A stretch of 64,000 nucleotides of DNA, from the sequence record MZ443771.1. One strand, written 5' to 3'. Within the stretch, counting starts at the first letter, position 1, and each line of letters opens with the position of its first letter. Under the pieces are notes generated by a model. The model was given only the letters and a program-made list of their open reading frames with translations. It was not told the DNA's origin and searched no databases. The translations under genes were made by a program, and so were the position numbers. Positions 12,252-35,104 of this stretch are shown here, one piece after another.

Positions 12252-13022
12252 ATGAGCAACATTGATAATACAATGCCTGAGGGCAAGTGGGAGTTCAACG
12301 AGCCTGTTGCTGCTGTGTTCGATAACATGCTGCAAAACTCAATCCCGTCGTATGGCCGTATGCGCGACTTGACCTATCGTCTGGGTCGTCAGTTCGTCAC
12401 GCCCGGTACTGCTATCGTTGACCTCGGAGCTTCTCTGGGTCGTGCTGTTGAGCCGTTCTGCAAAGAGTTCGGCGAGTACATCTACGTTCACGCTGCTGAC
12501 CGTCCTGAGCCAGATCGTGAAATCGGTAACATGTACTGCTGCTACGAAGTCGCTCCTGCGATGCTTGAACGCCTGCGTGAAAACGAAGTGCTGAAAGCGG
12601 CCAAAGCGAAAATCAGTAGCGAATCGCTGGTGGACGTTGACACGTTCCGCTTCGACGAACAGGTTGAGTGCTCGCTCATTCTGTCTGTACTCACTCTCCA
12701 GTTCACGCCGATTGAACATCGTCAACACGTCCTTGAGAAAGTCTATGACTCTCTTGCAAAAGGCGGTGCGTTCATTCTCGTTGAGAAGGTTCTCGGTGAC
12801 GACAACTTCCTCGACCGTCTGCTGGTGGACACGTACTATCACATGAAAGGCGACAACGGCTACACGCAAGAATCTATTGCATGTAAGCGTAAGTCACTCG
12901 AAGGTATTCTGGTGCCTGTCAAAGCTGCATGGAACGAAGAACTGCTGCGCAAAGCGGGCTTCAACCGTGTAGAATGTTTCTACCGCGATCTCAACTTCGC
13001 CGGATGGATCGCAATTAAGTAA
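12252..13022 (+). CDS. cmoA: carboxy-S-adenosyl-L-methionine synthase (CmoA homolog)
   Basis: Collinear with E. coli CmoA: WEFNEPVAAVFDNM..SIPSY, DLGASLG, TLQF, GGAFILVEK, NGYT..I..KRKSLE (the conserved carboxylate-binding Arg), AGF and NF. Confidence 0.9.
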   Translation: MSNIDNTMPEGKWEFNEPVAAVFDNMLQNSIPSYGRMRDLTYRLGRQFVTPGTAIVDLGASLGRAVEPFCKEFGEYIYVHAADRPEPDREIGNMYCCYEVAPAMLERLRENEVLKAAKAKISSESLVDVDTFRFDEQVECSLILSVLTLQFTPIEHRQHVLEKVYDSLAKGGAFILVEKVLGDDNFLDRLLVDTYYHMKGDNGYTQESIACKRKSLEGILVPVKAAWNEELLRKAGFNRVECFYRDLNFAGWIAIK

Positions 13023-13032
13023 GGGAAGTAGC

Positions 13033-14295
13033 ATGAAAGTAAACGGGCGTATCTTAGCAATCGTACCGCACAAGACTCTGGCTGATCGCACGAAGTCTGG
13101 TGTTGGTGCTTACATCGACGGACTCGAAGCGTATGGCTTCTGCGACTTCACCACTGACGGTGAGAACAGTTCCGTAACCAAGAGCTTGTGGTTTAACTAC
13201 GGTGACACCACGCTGAGTGATGGTTACAAAGTAGGGCACATTCAAAGTGAACTGCTTGCTGCTCTTGAGCGTCATCCGTATCGTGCAATCATTTGCAGCA
13301 CATACGAAGCGATTGAAGCTGCTGTCGGTCTGGGCTTGCCAAAGATTATGCCCGTTTACTATCGTTCGCATAACAGCTTCCTGTTGACGCAAGATCTCAA
13401 TGGTCTCGGTGCTGAGAAGATTCACCGTGCTCTACTGCAAGCTGGCGTAACTGGTCTGCGTGTGTTAGCGAACTGTGATTCAACTGCAAACAATCTGGCA
13501 TCACGTTATCCTGTTGCTGCGTCTGTCGCGTACAACTCGTTCAACGTGCCTGACTACAATCCACCAGCAAAGCGCAAGCCGACGCTGTTGATTATCTGTC
13601 GCTACGAAAAGGTTAAGCGCCCTGCGTTTGCTGCTCGTATCGCTGCTGCATCTGGTCTGCCTGTTCGTGTGATGACGGGCAGTGATCGCCAAGTTAAAAG
13701 CTGGCAGAAAGAATTGACCGATGCTGGTGTCAAAGACCATACAGTCGTTAGCGGTATCAGCGGCAAAGAGAAACTTGAGTTCATCGGTGCTTGTACCGTG
13801 GCTCTCTCCTGCGCTGAAATCGAATCGTTCGCTAACGGTGTGCGTGAGTCTATCCCGTACTGCCCAACGTTCATCGTGCAAACATCGAAGTTCGACTGGG
13901 CGAAAGATTACACACGCTTCTGCTCTCTGGACAAACACATCCACGTTCGCACCGTCGACCGTGTGACAGAGCAGGAAGTCACTGAGCTGGGTAATGAGAT
14001 TGCTTACTGGGCTACTACTCGCTACCTGAACAATGCTCAACGTAAAGACTTGATGACCAAGTGGGTTGCTCAAGTCGATAAAGGCTGGGCTGACTTTATG
14101 AAGAATGCCGTTGTTGCTGATGACGGTAAGCCTATGAAAACTGACCTGTCGAAAGAACTCGAACAAAAAGGCGTAGTAGACTGGTCAGAAGTACCTGCGC
14201 TTATGCGTACTGTAAAAGCATTACACAAATGCCATGCTCGTATGGGCCTGACATTCGATGGCACCAAAATCAAAACTAAAGGAAGAAAGAAATGA
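13033..14295 (+). CDS. GT-B fold glycosyltransferase (GT4-like)
   Basis: N-terminal SGVGAYI, C-domain LIICRYEKVKRP (GR...K) and ESFANGVRES (E.FG...EA). Confidence 0.75.
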   Translation: MKVNGRILAIVPHKTLADRTKSGVGAYIDGLEAYGFCDFTTDGENSSVTKSLWFNYGDTTLSDGYKVGHIQSELLAALERHPYRAIICSTYEAIEAAVGLGLPKIMPVYYRSHNSFLLTQDLNGLGAEKIHRALLQAGVTGLRVLANCDSTANNLASRYPVAASVAYNSFNVPDYNPPAKRKPTLLIICRYEKVKRPAFAARIAAASGLPVRVMTGSDRQVKSWQKELTDAGVKDHTVVSGISGKEKLEFIGACTVALSCAEIESFANGVRESIPYCPTFIVQTSKFDWAKDYTRFCSLDKHIHVRTVDRVTEQEVTELGNEIAYWATTRYLNNAQRKDLMTKWVAQVDKGWADFMKNAVVADDGKPMKTDLSKELEQKGVVDWSEVPALMRTVKALHKCHARMGLTFDGTKIKTKGRKK

Positions 14296-15326
14296 GCGTG
14301 ATTGGTGATATCTATAACATTCCTCAACCGTATGCGATGTACTGCGGCAATGCCAAAACCAAAGCAATGGCAAAGATTACTGCCGGTATGGTTGAGTGGG
14401 CTCCTGAGAAGGTATGTTGTGTAGTCGAAGACGCTGAACGTTTGTTCGCTGACGTACCGTGTGTTGAAGTGCGCGATCTCGATAAGACCGACGCTGAAAC
14501 TCTGGTTATCGGCTTTGCGCCATTTGGCGGTCAGATTAACGATGACATTGATCGCGTTGTCTGCGAAGCATTAAAGCGCGGTCTGAACGTTGCTGCTGCT
14601 CTGCACGTCAAACTGGCAGACAATCCTAAATACTTCGCGCTCGCTCGTGAGCACGGTGTATCACTGTATGACTTCCGCCATCACCCTGAGCAATATCCTC
14701 TGGGCACCGGTATTCGTCGTGACGGTATTCGCGTTCTGACTGTTGGCACCGACTGCTCCTGCGGTAAGAAATTCACTGCGCTCGCTCTGACCAAGAAGCT
14801 GACCGAGATGAGTCAGAAAGCTGTGTTCTGTGCTACAGGCCAGACAGGCTTCTTGATTAGCGGTCGTGGCATCAACAACGACACTGTGGTTGCTGACTTC
14901 CTTGCTGGTGCTGCTGAGTGGCTTTCACCTGATGACAAAGACGCAATCTATTTGATTGAAGGTCAAGGCGCTATTCGTCACCCTGCGTATACTGGTGGCA
15001 GCATGAGTCTGATTGCTGGCTCGCAACCTGATGCGCTCGTTATGTGTCACACTGTTGGCCGTAACGTCATGATGGGCACTGAGCGCGAGATCAGTATCAC
15101 GGACGAAATCTCTGCTAACCTTGCAGCGGCTGCGATGCACGACTGGTACCCTCGCGTTGTTGGTATCAGTATCAACTTCTGCGAGTCTGGTATGAGCAAA
15201 GAACAGCGCAAGAAGTATCTGGCGACTATTGAACGTAACATCGGCTACGTAGCGTTCGACCCGCAAGAAGGTGGCGAAGCGTTTGACCGTGTTGCTACTA
15301 CCATAGCGTTGCTGTCGCGCCCATGA
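14292..15326 (+). CDS. DUF1611 / DgcN-family P-loop protein
   Basis: VIGFAPFGG, VGTDCSCGKKFT, ATGQTG, DFLAGAAE, IEGQGAIRHPAY, GSQPDALVMCH. Confidence 0.88.
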   Translation: MSVIGDIYNIPQPYAMYCGNAKTKAMAKITAGMVEWAPEKVCCVVEDAERLFADVPCVEVRDLDKTDAETLVIGFAPFGGQINDDIDRVVCEALKRGLNVAAALHVKLADNPKYFALAREHGVSLYDFRHHPEQYPLGTGIRRDGIRVLTVGTDCSCGKKFTALALTKKLTEMSQKAVFCATGQTGFLISGRGINNDTVVADFLAGAAEWLSPDDKDAIYLIEGQGAIRHPAYTGGSMSLIAGSQPDALVMCHTVGRNVMMGTEREISITDEISANLAAAAMHDWYPRVVGISINFCESGMSKEQRKKYLATIERNIGYVAFDPQEGGEAFDRVATTIALLSRP

Positions 15327-16258
15327 TAGTCCTAATCGACAACGCTGCGTTAGCGAGTAATGCAGCGTATTTAAAATCACTCGCACCGACCATGATTCCC
15401 GTTGTGAAAGGTAATTTCTATGGGCATGGTTTAGATTGCGTGACAGCGTTCGCGTCTGACTTTGACGTGCTTGCAGTGCATAACGTCCAAGAGGCATTGA
15501 CGCTGCGTGAGCTTGGACTTGACCACACGCTGCTGATTCTCGGTGGTACTGACGCGCGTATGTGGAATATAGTTCCTGTATTGAATGCAGCGCAAGCCTC
15601 AACGTATGAAGGCCAGTATGCTGTGTTTGCTGATTGGGGCTGTCGTCGTATCAATGTCAGCCCTGGCCAACTTACCAGTCGCCCAGCTCTCGTTCTCATT
15701 CACTCTGAGGACTACCGTCAGCCTGTGTCTGCGCACACTGCTAACGAGATTGCTGTGCGTTACAACATGCCGCGCTCTCGATTGTCTGTAGGCTCAAGCA
15801 TGAATGCGCTTACACCAGACGCGCCTAAGTTGATGCCGCGTGTTGGTATGGCACTTACCGGTTATAGCAGTGATGAAACTGTTAACGGTAATTTGATCGT
15901 AGCGAAGACAGTGCTTGCTCGCATCTGCGATAAGCTGGATGCGGGTCGAGTATTTGGTTACGGTGCATTAGTGCCTAACAGCGCACACATGTTTCTGTAT
16001 TCGATTGATGTGGGTTATTACGATAACTTATATCAGTCAGAGAACAACACGCCTGTGCATTGCCCTAATGTGCCACACGCTAAGGTCACGTTGCTTACTG
16101 GCGTTGCGCGATCAATCAGCATGAACCATGCCTTCGTATTGTCAGATACTGAGCTACCGTTCGACTCTGAAATTGAATTGCTTGGACCGAACGTTCGCGC
16201 AGATTATCTGGCCAAACTTCACGGAACAACAACTGCGAATATTTTAAGGCTGGGTTAA
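15323..16258 (+). CDS. PLP-dependent alanine-racemase-like protein
   Basis: VVKGNFYGHG (PLP Lys motif VVKANAYGHG), AVHNVQEALTLRELG, PRVGMALTG, FGYG (catalytic Tyr), GYYD and ISMNH. Shorter than a typical Alr. Confidence 0.8.
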   Translation: MIVLIDNAALASNAAYLKSLAPTMIPVVKGNFYGHGLDCVTAFASDFDVLAVHNVQEALTLRELGLDHTLLILGGTDARMWNIVPVLNAAQASTYEGQYAVFADWGCRRINVSPGQLTSRPALVLIHSEDYRQPVSAHTANEIAVRYNMPRSRLSVGSSMNALTPDAPKLMPRVGMALTGYSSDETVNGNLIVAKTVLARICDKLDAGRVFGYGALVPNSAHMFLYSIDVGYYDNLYQSENNTPVHCPNVPHAKVTLLTGVARSISMNHAFVLSDTELPFDSEIELLGPNVRADYLAKLHGTTTANILRLG

Positions 16259-16260
16259 TC

Positions 16261-17130
16261 ATGGCTAAACACGTTTTGCGTAAGCTGTTTGAACAGCACG
16301 TTAAGCAAGAGGTTAAAGCTGACAAAGTTGCGGTGCTGCTGTCAAGCGGCCTTGATGGACTTGTCAGTGCTCTTGCTGCCCACGACTTAGGAAAGAAGGT
16401 ACATGCCTTTACTTTCCAGATGGGTGACAACGAAAGTTTTGACAGCAAACACGCACGTAAAGTAGCAGAGAAGATGGGCTGGGAGTTCACGCTTGTGAAA
16501 GTTCCTACGTCCGACACTGCTATCGCTCAGGGCTGGCGCACACTTCACGCCAAGTATCGCTGTATCAAAAAGCGTGACTACGAGTGTGCTTACCCTATGG
16601 TGTATTGCTACAAGGCAATCAAAGAAGCAGGTTACAAGTACGTTCTCAGCGGCCTTGTTGCTGACGCTTACTTCTGCTTTGCGCGTAATACCCACATCGC
16701 AAAAATCAGCGGCCCGCATAGCGTACTCGAAAAGTTCGACGAGTATCGCAAAGAGTATTGGGCGCCGTGGTTCAAGAACGGTAAGAAGTCTCTCGGCGTT
16801 GACGGCTATAATCCAAGTGGTATGCTGCAACACGAAATGCTGTGCGACACTTTCGGCCTGACTCACGTTAACCCGTGGCTGTTGAAAAAAGTCCATGACT
16901 ACTTCATCGGTCGTTCGTGGCAAGAACTAAATCAACCCAAGCAGAAAATGCCAATAACAGAAGCCTGGGCTGATCACATCGCTGTGGTAGGGCATCGTCC
17001 TCACCGTGGCTATCAAACAGAAGCTGGAGTACCTGCGTACTTCGAACGCTTACTGGATAATCCTGAGATCAACTTCAACGGTCGCAAGCGTGTTATGGAC
17101 CTTGCGCGTGATTGGTCAACGAGGACTTAA
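16261..17130 (+). CDS. asparagine-synthetase-like ATP-dependent amide ligase (synthetase domain only)
   Basis: PP-loop VLLSSGLDG and VLSGLVADAYF (AsnB SGEGADE.F). No N-terminal Cys glutaminase domain. Confidence 0.75.
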   Translation: MAKHVLRKLFEQHVKQEVKADKVAVLLSSGLDGLVSALAAHDLGKKVHAFTFQMGDNESFDSKHARKVAEKMGWEFTLVKVPTSDTAIAQGWRTLHAKYRCIKKRDYECAYPMVYCYKAIKEAGYKYVLSGLVADAYFCFARNTHIAKISGPHSVLEKFDEYRKEYWAPWFKNGKKSLGVDGYNPSGMLQHEMLCDTFGLTHVNPWLLKKVHDYFIGRSWQELNQPKQKMPITEAWADHIAVVGHRPHRGYQTEAGVPAYFERLLDNPEINFNGRKRVMDLARDWSTRT

Positions 17131-17131
17131 T

Positions 17132-17752
17132 ATGTTAGTACACATCATTGACGGAAGCGTAGGCGGTAACTATGTATTCCATAATCTGCAAGAGGCTGGC
17201 ATCAACGCGCGTGTTCATGCTCCTAGTGATCCACGTCGCCGCGCAGTAGCAGCAACCTATCCTTCGCTGTCTATGGGATTTACTCCCGAAGAGATTGAGA
17301 AGCATATCGGTAATGTGCTTGGCACGTATCGCGGTCTGTTCTTGATTAGCAGCTACGTTGGTTCGCTGGTGGCTCGCAACATGATTGACCAGTGTGGTCA
17401 GAGTCATAACATCATCTACTGCGATGATCTCAAGTGCGGGTCTACGCCTGTCGTTGCTTCCTCGATTTCTGTAAATGTCTATCAGAAGCAACGACAACTC
17501 GGACGCATTGCAGGTCGAATCAAACACTTCGACTTCGACCATGAGTTCATTGTAGCTGACAAGGCTGTGCGTTTTGCAGCAGGGTCAGAATTTGATGAGC
17601 ATGGTGCGCGTGAAGAACTGGACGACACGCCCAAGTTCTTATCGAGTCCGTCAATGATTGTTGCTGCACACAAACTCGGTGTGAAGCGCAACGTGTATCA
17701 CAACTACGCTGGTCTGGTGCAAGAGTTCCTTGAAAAGCGCCAGCAGCAATAA
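17132..17752 (+). CDS. degenerate glutamate/aspartate racemase (MurI)-like protein
   Basis: Start reassigned to ATG 17132 (RBS gagga). HIIDGSVGG resembles GVFDSGVGG, and TPEEIEK resembles KS.EEI. The two catalytic Cys positions appear replaced (LISSY, RIKHF). Confidence 0.45.
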   Translation: MLVHIIDGSVGGNYVFHNLQEAGINARVHAPSDPRRRAVAATYPSLSMGFTPEEIEKHIGNVLGTYRGLFLISSYVGSLVARNMIDQCGQSHNIIYCDDLKCGSTPVVASSISVNVYQKQRQLGRIAGRIKHFDFDHEFIVADKAVRFAAGSEFDEHGAREELDDTPKFLSSPSMIVAAHKLGVKRNVYHNYAGLVQEFLEKRQQQ

Positions 17753-18813: not shown

Positions 18814-19253
18814 TACGCAAATGACTGTGCCGCTGTTTGGCTTTGACAGAGCTATGCGCGGCCTACAGGTCTACACACCAAATGCACCTAAGCATGACGC
18901 TAACCCGAAAGCCTGTCGTTACTTCACGCGAGCATTCGGTGGCAAGCAGTTGGTGTGGGGATCAGAAATTAAACCTGAACGGGTCGACCGTATTCTTAAC
19001 TGAGTCTGTGTTCAAGGCATGTGCGCTACATCGTCTTGGACTCAACGCTTGGTCCGTTCTTGGTTCAGATGTTAATCTACATCTCTATCGTCAGTTGCGT
19101 CTTCTTGGTCTGCGTTTCGTTTGTCTTGGTGACAACGATGCTGCTGGTGAAAAGTTCAGTCAGACATTCGGACTAGGCACGACGAGCAAAGACCTCGATG
19201 AGATGACAGACGAAGAACTTCGCGATCTAACTCTACCATTCTTGAGGAAGTGA
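18737..19253 (+). pseudogene. Toprim (primase-like) gene split by a +1 frameshift near 18965-18968
   Basis: Frame 1 gives ...RYFT...LVWGSE. Frame +1 continues LNLNGSTVFLTESVFKA...GDNDAAG (Toprim E and DxD). Removing one A from GAAA fuses them into one ORF. Confidence 0.7.
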
Positions 19254-20352: not shown

Positions 20353-20754
20353 ATGAGACCCGAGACCATCGCACGAACGTATAGAGTCCCAAGCCAGACT
20401 TTGGAGACAGTTCACAATATCTGCGAACGCCAAGGCGTAAGATTATCTGACATTGTTCGACGCTATGCCCAATTCGTCGTGCGTACTCGCGGTGAGTTTC
20501 TGCGTTCGGCTCCTCGGCCAGAATCGTCCCAGCTCAACGTGCGTATGCCTTTTGATTTAGCACATTCGTTTAGTCTTGTGTGCAAACAATCTGGCTCTGG
20601 TACCAACACAACTGTGACCAGTTTCCTGAATGAGATCGTTCAACTCAATCGTATTCCTGAGGAACTTCTGCAAGAGTCGGCAGAAGATGTGCGTGAGTAT
20701 ATCCGCAAAGAACGTGCTCGCCTCGATACACTGGAGGCCCAACTCGGAAAATAA
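20353..20754 (+). CDS. tandem ribbon-helix-helix DNA-binding protein
   Basis: Two RHH-like units: RTYRVPSQTLETV...LSDIVRRY and QLNVRMPFDL. ATG 20353 follows aagga. Confidence 0.6.
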   Translation: MRPETIARTYRVPSQTLETVHNICERQGVRLSDIVRRYAQFVVRTRGEFLRSAPRPESSQLNVRMPFDLAHSFSLVCKQSGSGTNTTVTSFLNEIVQLNRIPEELLQESAEDVREYIRKERARLDTLEAQLGK

Positions 20755-20755
20755 A

Positions 20756-21598
20756 ATGACAGTAATCAGCCCCATTCGTTATCAGGGCAATAAGCGTAGC
20801 CTTATCCCTCTTATTCTTGAAAACACACCTGATGTGAAAGACTGCCCGCGTATGGTCGATGTGTTTGGCGGTAGTGCCACCGTGTGCGCGAACATGCCTC
20901 AGAAGTTTCGCGTCTACAACGAGCTTAGTCCTCAGGTGTATGAGATCGTTAAGATGCTTGTCGAGCAAGACCCGAAGAAAACATTGGGTCAAGTCAAGCG
21001 TCTGGTAAAGCACTGGTGCCTGACAAACAGCAACGAAGCGAACTATGACGCGTTTCGAACTGTCGTCCAGAAGAAGCGTACTCCCATACTTCACTACGTT
21101 GCGCACAGACACGCACACTCGAACATGCTGCGCTTTAACCAGCAGGGTGTGTACAACGTAGGCTTCGGCGATCGTGGTCTGATTGGAAAGTTCGAGGAGC
21201 TTGAGCATGAGCTTACGACATTCCACCAGCACATGCAGGGTGTTCACCTGACGAACATGAAGTACGGTAAGTTGTTGGGTAGATTAGGCAATCAACTGGA
21301 TTGCAATACGTTCTGCTACTTCGACCCACCGTATCTGGCAAGTGGCGCGATGCAGTACGGCAAGTGGACTGAATCAAACGAACGTAACCTGCTTGCTACG
21401 CTTGAACAACTCAATCGCTTAGGCGTACCGTGGATGTTGAGCAACGTTACAGAGCACAGGCATTTCTCGAACGACCTGTTAAAGCGTTGGCTAAAGAAAC
21501 ACGCGACGACCGTGCTCTACCCGAACAAAAGCTATGCGATGAACAACGGCCAGAGTGGCTCGCATGGTACTGTTGAAATTCTGGCAATGAACTACTGA
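20756..21598 (+). CDS. dam: Dam-like (D12 class) N6-adenine DNA methyltransferase
   Basis: SPIRYQGNK, DVFGGSATV and DPPY. Start reassigned to ATG 20756. Confidence 0.88.
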   Translation: MTVISPIRYQGNKRSLIPLILENTPDVKDCPRMVDVFGGSATVCANMPQKFRVYNELSPQVYEIVKMLVEQDPKKTLGQVKRLVKHWCLTNSNEANYDAFRTVVQKKRTPILHYVAHRHAHSNMLRFNQQGVYNVGFGDRGLIGKFEELEHELTTFHQHMQGVHLTNMKYGKLLGRLGNQLDCNTFCYFDPPYLASGAMQYGKWTESNERNLLATLEQLNRLGVPWMLSNVTEHRHFSNDLLKRWLKKHATTVLYPNKSYAMNNGQSGSHGTVEILAMNY

Positions 21599-31889: not shown

Positions 31890-32225
31890 ATGAAATACGA
31901 TCCGAAGAAAGACTACAAACCATTTCAGTATCTGGGTGCGCCTAAAGCTCCAACGAGCGGGTACTTAGGCAGTACAGTGTATGTCGTAGAGAACGATGTT
32001 AACATCGGAAGTGATGAATGCGAGTTCGTATTCACTGTAGCTCAGATGAATGAGATGGATAGAGGTACTGTTACGTTCCGTGCTAAAGACTCGGGCGGAG
32101 GTATCACGATAAAGAAATGCTCGGTCTCAGGTCTGAAAATGGTAATTAAGCTGGACAGACGCGTCATACAGTTTGGCAAAGTTCAGGTCGAATGGCAGAC
32201 AACGCCCCGACATTATTACTACTGA
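31890..32225 (+). CDS. hypothetical protein, probably late-expressed
   Basis: SD aggag lies inside the hairpin. Confidence 0.7.
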   Translation: MKYDPKKDYKPFQYLGAPKAPTSGYLGSTVYVVENDVNIGSDECEFVFTVAQMNEMDRGTVTFRAKDSGGGITIKKCSVSGLKMVIKLDRRVIQFGKVQVEWQTTPRHYYY

Positions 32226-32236
32226 ATCTGTAAAGA
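32225..32236 (+). promoter_or_regulatory. motif A variant (AATCTGTAAAGA)
   Basis: About 33 nt before ATG 32269, upstream of the ParB-like/C5-transferase pair. Confidence 0.5.
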
Positions 32237-32268
32237 CAGAGAAAGAGCAACCGATAAGAGATACGATA

Positions 32269-32973
32269 ATGGCAAAAACTGCTACCAAAACAAAGGACGG
32301 AAAAAAGAAAGGCGAGTTGAAGTTTGATCTGAAAAAACTCAATTCAGTCTCTCAGCTCAAGGGCGCAGAGTACAACCCGCGCTTCATTACTGACAGTCGC
32401 TTGAAAGCTCTCGAAGGTTCTCTCGGGAGTTTCGGTGATCTGTCTGGTATCGTGTTCAACAACAACATCAAGTCTGGTGTGTTGATCTCAGGCCACCAGC
32501 GTCTGAAATCAATCGACGGTTGGAAAACTCGCATCGAGATTCAGCCGACGACTGACAAGCACGGTACTATCGGTCTGGGCTACATTCATGCAACGCATCC
32601 GAAGAAAGCTGATCGTGTTATCAGCATTCCTCTGCGTGTCGTGAACTGGACTGATAAGAAAGCTGAGTACGCAGCGAACATCGCAGCGAACGCCCACGGC
32701 GGTGAGTTCGATAACAAGAAGCTCGCCAAGCTGGTTGAGAAACTCGATCTGAATACGATCAAGCCTCAGCTGCTGGGTCTCGACCCGCTTGAGATTCGTG
32801 GTCTGCAAGCCAAGATCAAGATTCAGGCGAACGTCGAAGATACGAAACGTGCTGGCAAGACTACTGGCCAGATGAACGGCAGCACCGGTAAGTTTAATGA
32901 GTACAACCCTGATGATGTGGGTGACACTCTGAACTGCACCTGCCCGCGTTGTGGATTTAAGTTCGAGGGATAA
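32269..32973 (+). CDS. ParB/Srx-like N-terminal domain protein with a C-terminal Zn ribbon
   Basis: YNPRFI...LEGSL..FG.L..IV, LISGHQRL, and C-terminal CTCPRCGFKF. Confidence 0.75.
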   Translation: MAKTATKTKDGKKKGELKFDLKKLNSVSQLKGAEYNPRFITDSRLKALEGSLGSFGDLSGIVFNNNIKSGVLISGHQRLKSIDGWKTRIEIQPTTDKHGTIGLGYIHATHPKKADRVISIPLRVVNWTDKKAEYAANIAANAHGGEFDNKKLAKLVEKLDLNTIKPQLLGLDPLEIRGLQAKIKIQANVEDTKRAGKTTGQMNGSTGKFNEYNPDDVGDTLNCTCPRCGFKFEG

Positions 32974-32974
32974 T

Positions 32975-35104
32975 ATGATCATCAAGCCGCCAACCATGAA
33001 GGAAATCAACAAGCTGGCTAAACCCTGGCGTGGTATGAGTTTCTTCGCAGGTTGCGGTGGGTCTTCGACCGGTCACAAGATGGCCGGTATCGACATTCTG
33101 TTGAGCAACGAGTTTATTGACTCTGCGCGTGAGTCGTATGAAGCAAACCACCCGACAACCAAAGTGCTGCCTCATGATATCCGTCGCTTAGACCCAAGCA
33201 AGCTGTTGCGCTACTGCGGTCTTGCTAAGGGTGAGCTGGATTTGCTTGATGGTAGTCCTCCGTGCTTTACCGAAGACACAATCATCCACACTGCTGACGG
33301 CATGAAGTTCATTTCTGATATGCACGTCAACGATCTGGCAATGACGAGCGTTGGTGAATACTTTCCTGTGTACGACACTATGGTTCGTCCGTATGTCGGT
33401 ACGATGCACAAGATTGAAACGATGCTCGGTAGCAACAAAGCAACGCCAGAGCACCCGTTCTTTGTTCGTCGCTCTCAGGCAGACGGTAGCTACTCTGAGC
33501 CGTTCTGGTGTGATGCGAAAGACGTGCAAGAAGGTGACTTGCTCGGTACGCCGCGCACTACCCCTGACATGGGGATTGACGTGTATCAGGCTCAGATTGA
33601 TCAGTTGCCTAAGTTAGTAGCGGACTGGGTGACTTACCCTGAGTTCTGGTGGATGATTGGTCACTGGTGTGATCGTGGCACAATCGAAACAGTTAACGGT
33701 GTTGACGTCATCTGCTTCGAGTCGCACTCAAGCCTTGAGAACGCGATGATCGAGCAGGCGTTTGATGCGCTTAAAATCAGTAGCCTGAATCGTATCGACA
33801 CGACAACGGCGCAGCGCAAAACATTCCGCACTGTTATCGAAGCAGAGCTGGTGCAGTTCCTGCGTCGATTCGTCAGTCAGGAGCAGAACAAGTTTTCTCG
33901 TCGTCTGCCTGCAATCGTGTTCCATTTGTCAAACGAGTTGAAGCAACAATTCATTCTCGGTTGTGCGGGGCATGACTACGTGACTGCTATGGGCACAAGC
34001 CTTGCTATCACATCTGATAGTCGCCGCTTCCTGATTGAGCTGAACTACCTGTGTGCGTCTGCTTTCAATCGTCCGCTGTTTGACGGTCTTATCTGGGCAG
34101 ACGTTAACTTCGGTAGTGCGTTAACGCCGCGTGAGCGTAACAGTTCACGAGCGCATATCGGCTTCCTGTTCCTGCAGGATGAAGCGCTGTTCATGCACGA
34201 GTTCTCCGATGAAGACCCGCATCTCTGGGTTGAAGTGATTGAGAACCTCGCGTATCAGGCGACCTGTGACGTGTATAACTTCTCTGTGCAGACAGACGAG
34301 ACATACGTTGCAAATAGCATGGTCGTTCACAACTGCAAAGGCTTCTCTACTGCTGGTGTGAAAGAAGAAGGCTGGGGCAAAGAAGTTAAATACAGCGACA
34401 ACAAGTATCAGCAGGTTGATGACCTGTTCGATCAGTATTGCCGTATGCTTCAAGGCATGGAGCCAAAAGTGTTCACTGCGGAAAACGTCAGCGGCCTAAT
34501 CAAGGGTACCTCTAAAGGGTACTTTGTCGAAATCATGAAGCACTTCGACAGATTAGGTTATTATGTTCGTGCTCCGATGCTGAATGCTTGCTGGCTTGGC
34601 GTACCGCAGTCGCGTGAACGTATCATCTTCATGGGTGTGCGCAAAGACGTTGCCCATGCTCTCGGCTATAAGTCTGCTCAGACCGCTGTGCCTGATGTTA
34701 TCCCGTGCGAGACGCAAGCGTTTCTCGGTGATGCGTTGCCGCACATCATGCGATACAAAACAACGCAGCGTGACCTGATCAAATATCTGCCTGCCGTTAA
34801 CGGTCCGATGCCTACGATTACTGCTGCTGATGCGATTGCGTATGAGACTGCGCGATTCTCGTCTGCTGGCTTTATCGAAGACAACAAAGGTCATCGGCGT
34901 AAGCTGACCATCGACGAACTCAAAGTTATCTCTGGACTGCCGTCTGACTATAAGCTGATGGGTGAGTTTGAAGAACAATGGGAACGTCTTGGTCGTATCT
35001 GTGTGCCAGCAATGACACACGCTGCATCTAAGGCTTTCATCGAGCACATTCTTCTGCCGTATGCGAAGAAGCGTAAGAAGAAGCCCGGCGATATCTTTAA
35101 GTAA
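32975..35104 (+). CDS. DNA cytosine-C5 methyltransferase-fold enzyme, predicted carboxymethyltransferase; intein-containing
   Basis: Motif I FFAGCGG, IV GSPP|C-KGFS, VI ENV, VIII PQSRER, IX RKLTIDE. Motif X reads LGRICVP (Arg at 34994-34996 in place of Asn). Start ATG 32975; 352 aa after splicing. Confidence 0.85.
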   Translation: MIIKPPTMKEINKLAKPWRGMSFFAGCGGSSTGHKMAGIDILLSNEFIDSARESYEANHPTTKVLPHDIRRLDPSKLLRYCGLAKGELDLLDGSPPCFTEDTIIHTADGMKFISDMHVNDLAMTSVGEYFPVYDTMVRPYVGTMHKIETMLGSNKATPEHPFFVRRSQADGSYSEPFWCDAKDVQEGDLLGTPRTTPDMGIDVYQAQIDQLPKLVADWVTYPEFWWMIGHWCDRGTIETVNGVDVICFESHSSLENAMIEQAFDALKISSLNRIDTTTAQRKTFRTVIEAELVQFLRRFVSQEQNKFSRRLPAIVFHLSNELKQQFILGCAGHDYVTAMGTSLAITSDSRRFLIELNYLCASAFNRPLFDGLIWADVNFGSALTPRERNSSRAHIGFLFLQDEALFMHEFSDEDPHLWVEVIENLAYQATCDVYNFSVQTDETYVANSMVVHNCKGFSTAGVKEEGWGKEVKYSDNKYQQVDDLFDQYCRMLQGMEPKVFTAENVSGLIKGTSKGYFVEIMKHFDRLGYYVRAPMLNACWLGVPQSRERIIFMGVRKDVAHALGYKSAQTAVPDVIPCETQAFLGDALPHIMRYKTTQRDLIKYLPAVNGPMPTITAADAIAYETARFSSAGFIEDNKGHRRKLTIDELKVISGLPSDYKLMGEFEEQWERLGRICVPAMTHAASKAFIEHILLPYAKKRKKKPGDIFK
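33263..34333 (+). mobile_element. intein (357 aa) with a degenerate LAGLIDADG-type domain, inserted just before the catalytic Cys
   Basis: Starts CFTEDTIIHTADG, has block B ATPEHPF, block F DVYNFSVQTDETY and ends VHN followed by Cys+1. Endonuclease-like blocks WWMIGHWCDRG and QFILGCAGHD are degraded. Confidence 0.92.

Follow-up and report, generated by a model that had tools for sequence, protein, structure and literature searches.

A DUF1611 protein and a compact alanine-racemase-fold protein in a candidate cytosine hypermodification locus of Erwinia phage pEa_SNUABM_20

The candidate modification locus

Erwinia phage pEa_SNUABM_20 (sequence record MZ443771.1) is an Alexandravirus-type jumbo phage with a genome of 265.9 kb, of which we analyzed a stretch of 64,000 nucleotides, hereafter the window, whose coordinates are those of the genome. 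Our subject is a pair of adjacent genes in this window, one for a DUF1611 protein that resembles the bacterial enzyme DgcN and the other for a compact protein with the fold of alanine racemase (Alr). Judged by sequence comparison, the window encodes a complete CmoA-CmoX-CmoY set for the modification of DNA cytosines, and the pair sits between cmoA and cmoY, with cmoX 16 kb away. All genes of the modification locus (Table 1) lie on the + strand, within a region devoted to replication and nucleotide metabolism.

The genes in and around the pair are tightly packed. Both open reading frames (ORFs) reported in a preliminary description of this stretch were recovered, as was the overlap between them, which measures 4 nucleotides (ATGA) at 15323-15326. 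An identical ATGA overlap, at 14292-14295, joins the stop codon of the preceding gene, for a glycosyltransferase-like (GT-like) protein, to the DUF1611 start, and cmoY begins 2 nucleotides past the stop codon of the Alr-like gene. The overlaps and the 2-nucleotide gap thus argue that four genes, for the GT-like, DUF1611, Alr-like and CmoY proteins, are translationally coupled. Ratios of nonsynonymous to synonymous substitution (dN/dS) of 0.18-0.20 for the Alr-like gene, 0.13-0.20 for the DUF1611 gene and 0.02-0.05 for cmoY indicate purifying selection.

The system against which the locus can be read is that of Synechococcus phage S-B43, which produces 5-carboxymethylcytosine (5cxmC) and 5-glycyl-carboxymethylcytosine in DNA (Yang et al., Nat Commun 2025, December; PMC12783734). 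In S-B43, CmoA makes carboxy-S-adenosylmethionine (Cx-SAM), CmoX installs 5cxmC at C5 of DNA cytosines, and CmoY adenylates the 5cxmC carboxylate and ligates glycine to it with ATP; CmoX is a C5-methyltransferase homolog whose diagnostic marks are an SPPC motif and Arg350, which binds the carboxylate of Cx-SAM (PMC12783734). The CmoA homolog of the window is an acidic protein (isoelectric point, pI, 5.1) whose best NCBIfam match is TIGR00740 over its full length (E 2.8e-41; 141.8 bits, below the 193.3-bit cutoff), and it shares 31% identity with the methyltransferase encoded beside CmoY and CmoX in Synechococcus phage S-B05. The CmoY homolog matches Pfam Asn_synthase (E 6.9e-16) and is about 34% identical to the S-B05 homolog of SpCmoY (E 9e-43). 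In a tblastn search of a phage collection, every related jumbo phage of Erwinia and Dickeya carried the window ligase, which also matched S-B05 and S-B43 (33%), in which the ligase gene lies between a methyltransferase gene and a C5-cytosine DNA methyltransferase gene. A queuosine/7-deazaguanine pathway was rejected, its sole sign being a weak QueC match on CmoY; other genes of that pathway were not searched for.

Protein queries from S-B05 located the CmoX homolog as a single 717-aa ORF with Pfam matches to DNA_methylase (E 6.1e-38) and to Intein_splicing/Hint. Its spliced exteins align with S-B05 CmoX and keep both the SPPC motif and the Arg at the position of SpCmoX R350. The 357-aa intein interrupts SPPC immediately ahead of its catalytic Cys, and from this position CmoX would need protein splicing to become active. 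An unrelated metagenomic phage has an intein at the same CmoX site (743 aa; L017:3611-5842), and CmoX homologs occur in all of the ~50 related jumbo-phage records. The ORF whose end overlaps the CmoX start encodes a ParB-like protein that had no Pfam match and whose identity is accepted from its match to PHROG 620 (E 4.5e-32); ParBc-domain proteins are found on many CmoX-carrying phage contigs (PMC12783734).

At the system level, the locus is of the CmoA/X/Y kind by every defining feature that can be examined in sequence. Like S-B43, it has homologs of all three proteins, the SPPC motif with its Arg, a CmoY without a glutaminase domain and a ParB-like neighbor. It differs from S-B43 in its three extra genes between cmoA and cmoY (GT-B-like, DUF1611 and Alr-like), in a strongly basic CmoY that is ~34% identical, and in its distant, intein-bearing cmoX. 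It may be asked whether such a cluster modifies RNA instead, either phage or host tRNA in a manner similar to uridine 5-oxyacetic acid (cmo5U), especially as RefSeq and PHROGs label the CmoA homolog a tRNA methyltransferase. We regard this as highly improbable, as the partner transferase is a homolog of C5-cytosine DNA methyltransferases with the Cx-SAM-specific Arg, the neighboring genes serve replication, and DNA was the demonstrated substrate of the homologous system in S-B43 (PMC12783734). The tRNA cmo5U pathway itself was rejected on the first of these grounds.

The 420-aa GT-like protein had no match in Pfam, PHROG or NCBIfam. Its assignment comes from homologs of 25-40% identity in metagenomic cassettes, three of which were scanned (L014, L016 and L018) and gave weak matches to Glycos_transf_1, and from its neighbors in the ESM Atlas, which are GT1/GT4 clusters of viral and bacterial origin (score 0.97-0.98).

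Table 1. Features of the modification locus in the window, with the basis of each assignment.
Feature	Coordinates	Strand	Basis
CmoA homolog (carboxy-SAM synthase-like class I methyltransferase)	12252..13022	+	TIGR00740, PHROG 4752
GT-B (GT4-like) glycosyltransferase-like protein, 420 aa, pI 9.1	13033..14295	+	homologs and ESM Atlas neighbors
DUF1611/DgcN-like protein, phage clade, 344 aa	14292..15326	+	Pfam DUF1611_N and DUF1611_C
Compact alanine-racemase-fold PLP (pyridoxal 5'-phosphate) enzyme (predicted), phage-restricted family, 311 aa	15323..16258	+	Pfam, AlphaFold2 model, invariant residues
CmoY homolog: AsnS-like PP-loop AMP-forming amide ligase without glutaminase domain, pI 9.3	16261..17130	+	Pfam Asn_synthase
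Conserved 206-aa protein, pathway membership uncertain	17132..17752	+	no family match
ParB-like protein directly 5' of CmoX	32173..32973	+	PHROG 620
CmoX-type C5-cytosine DNA (carboxy)methyltransferase, intein-interrupted	32951..35104	+	Pfam DNA_methylase and Intein_splicing/Hint
Intein, 357 aa, inside the CmoX ORF	33263..34333	+	starts with Cys, ends with His-Asn, +1 residue Cys

The DUF1611 protein and the racemase-fold protein

The window DUF1611 protein matches Pfam DUF1611_N (E 2.1e-17) and DUF1611_C (E 2.5e-51), both above cutoff, and so has the two domains that define DgcN, one Rossmann-like and the other with a P-loop; PDB entry 7XRJ matches it over residues 10-329 (E 4.8e-62). Identity between the phage proteins and bacterial DgcN is about 42%. 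Among 99 bacterial homologs, 60 positions are conserved in at least 95% of sequences, and the phage clade keeps 48 of these, including the GTDCxxGK P-loop, TGQTG and EGQG. The other 12 differ or vary in the phage clade, and 11 further positions are specific to it, a pattern of conservation that fits the same chemistry acting with a different specificity. The phage proteins are monophyletic with respect to the sampled bacterial DgcN proteins in a maximum-likelihood tree (support 100/100). The NCBIfam model for DgcN (NF041892), which describes the enzyme as acetylating the alpha-amine of a D-amino acid, gives the window protein 306.9 bits against an equivalog cutoff of 480 bits, and the product should be named DgcN-like, not DgcN.

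In bacteria, DgcN is a D-glutamate N-acetyltransferase, as quoted in PMC11747546, and works with DgcA (EC 2.3.1.312 and EC 5.1.1.25, respectively), an enolase-family N-acetyl-D-glutamate racemase that acts on the N-acetylated product. The preliminary description held that bacterial DUF1611 genes usually sit beside such an enolase-family gene and that this partner is missing from the phage. The first statement holds in the one case checked, in Pantoea, where the DgcN gene is followed by an MR_MLE gene, and the window cassette indeed has no enolase-superfamily (MR_MLE) gene of the DgcA type. Thus the phage and bacterial arrangements are alike in the two-domain DUF1611 protein, in 48 of its 60 most conserved positions and in a racemase gene directly 3' of it, and they differ in that the phage proteins form a separate clade, are encoded within a DNA-modification operon, and have as their partner a predicted PLP-dependent Alr-fold protein. 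DgcN would acetylate the amine that has to be free for PLP chemistry, and the order of reactions should therefore also differ from that of DgcN-DgcA.

The racemase-fold protein is more remote from its characterized relatives. Ala_racemase_N matches it at residues 5-79 only (E 1.8e-14), the match to Ala_racemase_C is weak (E 0.002; 18.2 bits against a 25-bit Pfam cutoff), and TIGR00492 (alr) gives 54.5 bits against a cutoff of 168. An AlphaFold2 model built from a 104-sequence alignment (mean predicted local distance difference test score 96.1; predicted template modeling score 0.92) nevertheless has the two-domain architecture of the family, an alpha/beta barrel followed by a C-terminal beta domain. 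Its 50 best matches in the PDB comprise 49 alanine racemases or derivatives and one histidine racemase, with template modeling (TM) scores of about 0.8 (range 0.65-0.82, normalized to the query).

The active site is conserved where catalysis is concerned. Residues K29, Y33, R109, H127, R173 and Y213, the counterparts of Alr K39, Y43, R136, H166, R219 and Y265', are invariant in all 11 sequences of the phage family, down to 32% identity, and the equivalent of M312' is kept in 10 of the 11, with Leu in the remaining one. In Alr, Arg219, His166 and Arg136 provide the contact to the pyridine nitrogen and the carboxylate network. Retention of both catalytic residues, as claimed beforehand, therefore holds across the family: the PLP lysine is K29 in VVKGNFYGHG, a position that is also lysine in 91 of 93 aligned Alr proteins, and the second-base tyrosine (Tyr265' in Geobacillus numbering) is Y213 in FGYG. 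The ISMNH and GYYD motifs that had been singled out are likewise present, and the residues of the alanine-specific pocket are systematically changed, the equivalent of K129, the carbamylated lysine, being F or Y, that of Y354 A or S, and that of D313 mostly N; the GYADG motif of Alr reads GYYDN. Proteins of the family measure 300-327 aa, compared with a median of 352 aa for the aligned ordinary Alr proteins and ~350-390 aa for the wider group of Alr, DadX, VanT, broad-spectrum, and histidine and lysine racemases. The barrel is thus shortened, as had been noticed, through small deletions spread along it that amount to about 40 residues.

Taken together, the fold, the PLP lysine, the tyrosine base and the Arg/His/Arg set shared with the Alr family make racemase activity probable, and the altered pocket probably suits an amino acid other than plain alanine. 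A different PLP-dependent activity of fold-type III, for example that of a decarboxylase, aldolase or beta-eliminase making the amine used by CmoY, would also account for pocket residues that differ from Alr and for hidden Markov model scores far under the Alr equivalog cutoffs. PLP enzymes of other phage DNA hypermodification pathways do act as decarboxylases. We consider this improbable, however, given the invariance of K29, Y213, R109, H127 and R173 across such divergent sequences and the fact that the top 50 structural matches of the predicted model are all amino-acid racemases of the Alr family. The product should be called Alr-fold, not Alr; this label and DgcN-like are both chosen because the two proteins score below the curated equivalog thresholds and each lacks at least one defining feature.

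Variation among related phages and distribution of the cassette

The interval between cmoA and the 206-aa gene is a hot spot of gene exchange, with four tailoring sets among jumbo phages that are otherwise 80-90% identical. In AD1, Alexandra and SNUABM_22 the order is cmoA, DUF1611, cmoY; SNUABM_14 and SNUABM_7 add the GT-like gene after cmoA; and the eight phages of the window group have the GT-like, DUF1611 and Alr-like genes between cmoA and cmoY. In Y3, cmoA is followed by a very different AsnS-like gene and a 2-oxoglutarate-Fe(II) oxygenase gene, and DUF1611 is missing. This exchange suggests rapid diversification of the DNA adduct. Sister metagenomic phages also differ in whether they carry the racemase gene (L016 and L017 versus L023). 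The racemase is therefore facultative, being absent from AD1, Alexandra and SNUABM_14, and DUF1611 and CmoY are the constant pair.

The DUF1611 allele co-varies with the presence of the racemase gene. Between the window and AD1, flanking genes are 81-91% identical (CmoA 91%, CmoY 85%) and DUF1611 is 59% identical; between the window and SNUABM_14, the values are 80% for the GT-like protein, 82% for CmoY and 57% for DUF1611; and between L016 and L023, they are 93% for CmoY and 73% for DUF1611. The DUF1611/Alr-like segment thus appears to be swapped as a unit, which argues for functional coupling of the two proteins. Racemase-associated lineages include the deepest branches of the DUF1611 tree, and the distribution of the racemase needs two changes, most simply two losses, on a tree in which three rows are labeled by inference, the deepest row is long-branched, and the ancestral state is read from few lineages.

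Beyond these relatives, the racemase-like family is rare and essentially confined to phages. A word-indexed search of 5.8 billion proteins returned 6 clusters, and an exhaustive profile search of 1.84 billion representatives returned 8 at E<1e-30, after which scores drop from 175 to 91 bits and ordinary racemases begin. In all 8 clusters, the gene is found on a phage-like contig with DUF1611 immediately before it and an AsnS-like gene immediately after it. Pattern scans found four contigs in IMG/VR, all Erwinia-phage-like, no further loci among metagenome contigs of the Joint Genome Institute (JGI), and no member of the family in 185,579 bacterial species genomes. In unrelated metagenomic phages, the pathway genes are contiguous with cmoX and cmoA. 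Their order is C5-methyltransferase, GT1-like, DUF1611, Alr-like, AsnS-like and methyltransferase in L023; C5-methyltransferase (with SPPC and Arg), DUF1611, Alr-like, AsnS-like and CmoA-like in L010 and L011; and C5-methyltransferase, CmoA-like, a 405-aa homolog of the 420-aa GT-like protein, DUF1611, Alr-like and AsnS-like in L020. L014 carries directly after cmoY a gene for 3-deoxy-D-arabino-heptulosonate 7-phosphate (DAHP) synthase of the AroFGH type (L014:9943-10806; TIGR00034, 180 bits, above cutoff). Prephenate is a co-substrate of CmoA, and this gene is plausibly a phage-encoded means of supplying it.

Sequence nearly identical to 13033-17130 of the window (up to 78% of sampled words) is present in metagenomes from soil, food, tobacco, retting, compost and wastewater, as well as in wastewater metatranscriptomes, which indicates that phages carrying the cassette are environmentally widespread.

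These distributions bear on the proposal, made in the preliminary description, that the two genes form a D-amino-acid module. The pair is real and co-inherited, and its racemase-like member has an altered pocket, but it does not stand alone, lying instead in the middle of the cmo block. A free-standing racemase and N-acetyltransferase acting on the D-amino-acid or peptidoglycan metabolism of the host rather than on DNA would be in keeping with the service of bacterial DgcN in D-glutamate catabolism beside an enolase-family racemase, and with the resemblance of both phage proteins to soluble metabolite enzymes. Yet the pair is, in every context examined, in a cmo cluster directly 5' of cmoY, often directly 3' of cmoX or the GT-like gene, is translationally coupled to cmoY, and was never found alone, nor in the bacterial genomes searched. 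We therefore find this account improbable. As the block of GT-like, DUF1611, Alr-like and CmoY genes is flanked by cmoA, with cmoX elsewhere in the window, the likely target is phage DNA, in the form of 5cxmC amides, and not peptidoglycan recycling or general D-amino-acid metabolism.

Several neighboring genes deserve mention. The 206-aa protein encoded after cmoY had no family match in library scans; homologs occur in AD1, Alexandra and Y3 at 59-85% identity, and the gene is absent in SNUABM_14. The ORF list places its start at a GTG at 17006, overlapping cmoY by 125 nucleotides, whereas RefSeq relatives use 17132, which we prefer as a better fit to the tight gene packing. Just upstream of the modification block, 10499-11086 matches PHROG 335 ("phosphatase"), and its counterpart in AD1 and Y3 carries the annotation O-acetyl-ADP-ribose deacetylase (macro domain). 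For the region of Dickeya phage AD1 that corresponds to the replication and nucleotide-metabolism region, the annotation lists a fragment of DNA polymerase I, a macro-domain protein, pieces of primase and a DNA methyltransferase. At 18837-19253, small "DNA primase" annotations correspond to one or two short ORFs that vary between relatives (L005 and L013), and the primase gene could be fragmented or interrupted. The window also encodes, at 20630-21598, a second DNA methyltransferase that has the DPPY motif of the N6-adenine type and is annotated as "DNA methyltransferase" in relatives; the phage probably carries adenine methylation besides the proposed cytosine modification.

A proposed pathway and its significance

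Our preferred reading, to which we assign a probability of about 0.55, is that the DUF1611 and Alr-like proteins are accessory enzymes of a CmoA-CmoX-CmoY type cytosine hypermodification, acting on soluble compounds as precursor or tailoring enzymes. That the two belong to the cmo pathway at all can be held with good confidence; the presence of homologs of all three published components, with the marks of CmoX and the ParB-like neighbor, supports this membership. The division of charge among the proteins suggests where each acts. The CmoX exteins, CmoY, GT-like and ParB-like proteins are basic (pI 8.9-9.7, net charge +7 to +20). A pI of 5.1-7.2 places CmoA, a known small-molecule enzyme, in the acidic to neutral range together with DUF1611 and most Alr-like proteins, the values being 5.5 for the window DUF1611 protein (range 5.1-7.0 among its homologs) and a median of 6.4 for the Alr-like proteins. 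This would be consistent with DUF1611 and the racemase working on soluble metabolites and with CmoX, CmoY and the GT-like protein working on DNA.

The pathway may be envisioned as follows. CmoA would make Cx-SAM, CmoX would convert DNA cytosines to 5cxmC, and CmoY would form the amide, these being the steps shown for the S-B43 homologs. In clusters of the DUF1611 type, the ligated amine would derive from an amino acid in the D configuration and be produced in the cytoplasm. The Alr-like protein would act as a two-base PLP racemase with an enlarged pocket and produce the D-isomer of an L-amino acid that is probably other than plain alanine; the absence of both Tyr354 and the carbamylated Lys points to a side chain larger than that of alanine. 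The racemase would thereby supply a D-isomer that is perhaps too scarce in the host, and phages could dispense with its gene when the host pool suffices or another DUF1611 allele removes the need for it. The part of DUF1611 would be that of a DgcN-like, acyl-CoA-dependent N-acyltransferase that recognizes and processes the D-amino acid. Most consistent with such a scheme would be a D-diamino acid acylated on its alpha-amine, so that its second amine stays free for ligation. From this building block and 5cxmC on DNA, the basic CmoY would then form the adduct, to which the basic GT-B-like protein may add a sugar. Cytosines would in this way come to bear a bulky group that diversifies from one related phage to the next, presumably as a means of evading host nucleases. 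That cytosines carry such a D-amino-acid adduct, a 5cxmC amide that is possibly N-acylated and glycosylated and is made with a phage-only racemase and a repurposed DgcN-like acyltransferase, has in our estimate somewhat less than an even chance, and the particular role and place in the order given here to DUF1611 are more tentative still.

Alternatively, tailoring may follow ligation. CmoY would attach a diamino acid such as lysine, ornithine or diaminopimelate, the Alr-like protein would epimerize the tethered alpha-center, and DUF1611 would cap the resulting D-amine by N-acetylation. The same genomic evidence speaks for this order of events, and acetyl capping of amines is known from thymidine hypermodifications. 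That DgcN acetylates the alpha-amine of a D-amino acid is also in its favor (NF041892; PMC11747546). Although it ranks as a close rival of the preferred reading, we judge it unlikely in itself, since neither DUF1611 nor most Alr-like proteins, being acidic or neutral, share the basic character of CmoX, CmoY and the GT-like protein in the same cassettes, and the invariant R109, equivalent to the carboxylate-binding Arg of Alr, fits a free amino acid equally well.

Several observations weigh against the reading that we prefer, in which the two proteins prepare a soluble building block for CmoY. Plain N-alpha-acetylation would block the very amine that CmoY needs, so that a diamino acid or another acyl chemistry must be assumed. 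The score below the DgcN cutoff and the 12 changed positions imply that the donor and acceptor of DUF1611 may differ greatly from those of DgcN, and the matches of the CmoA homolog and the Alr-like protein likewise fall below curated equivalog cutoffs. Close relatives with DUF1611 and CmoY and without the racemase indicate that DUF1611 and the racemase are not strictly interdependent. Finally, the argument from charge is a weak one, as SpCmoY acts on DNA and yet its S-B05 homolog has an acidic pI of 5.8.

The proposal has precedent in the general logic of phage DNA hypermodification. In phages ViI, M6, SP10 and PhiW-14, and with the T4 glucosyltransferases, a handle is first installed on the base, and decoration follows through amino-acid transfer or the action of PLP enzymes, acetyltransferases or GT-B enzymes; in the thymidine and hydroxymethyl-pyrimidine clusters tailoring genes are swapped between relatives. 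The cmo handle differs from these in being a C5 carboxymethyl group placed on cytosine via Cx-SAM by other enzyme families, and we know of no D-amino-acid step in the thymidine or hydroxymethyl-pyrimidine clusters. The authors of the S-B43 study considered that other CmoY clusters probably use other amines, glycine being the sole appended amine known, and they did not identify the enzymes that make those amines (PMC12783734). In the main text and the supplementary files searched, PMC12783734 does not mention DUF1611, a racemase or Erwinia, nor does its main text mention inteins, and we found no description of an extension by DUF1611, racemase and GT genes in the searchable literature.

Our findings offer a context-based functional hypothesis for phage DUF1611 proteins. 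If the proposed pathway is correct, it would be the first case of a natural DNA modification that contains a D-amino acid, and DUF1611 would for the first time be assigned a role other than in D-glutamate catabolism. Y3, AD1, SNUABM_14 and SNUABM_20 constitute four directly comparable natural genotypes. The Alr-like family, as a minimal (~310 aa) alanine-racemase scaffold with altered specificity, may also interest the fields of enzymology and DNA-labeling technology. More broadly, the recurrent extended cassette, with its GT-like, DUF1611 and compact racemase genes, probably yields chemically new and stereochemically unusual DNA adducts, and its variation between very close Erwinia and Dickeya jumbo phages is the signature that would be expected of an arms race with host nucleases.

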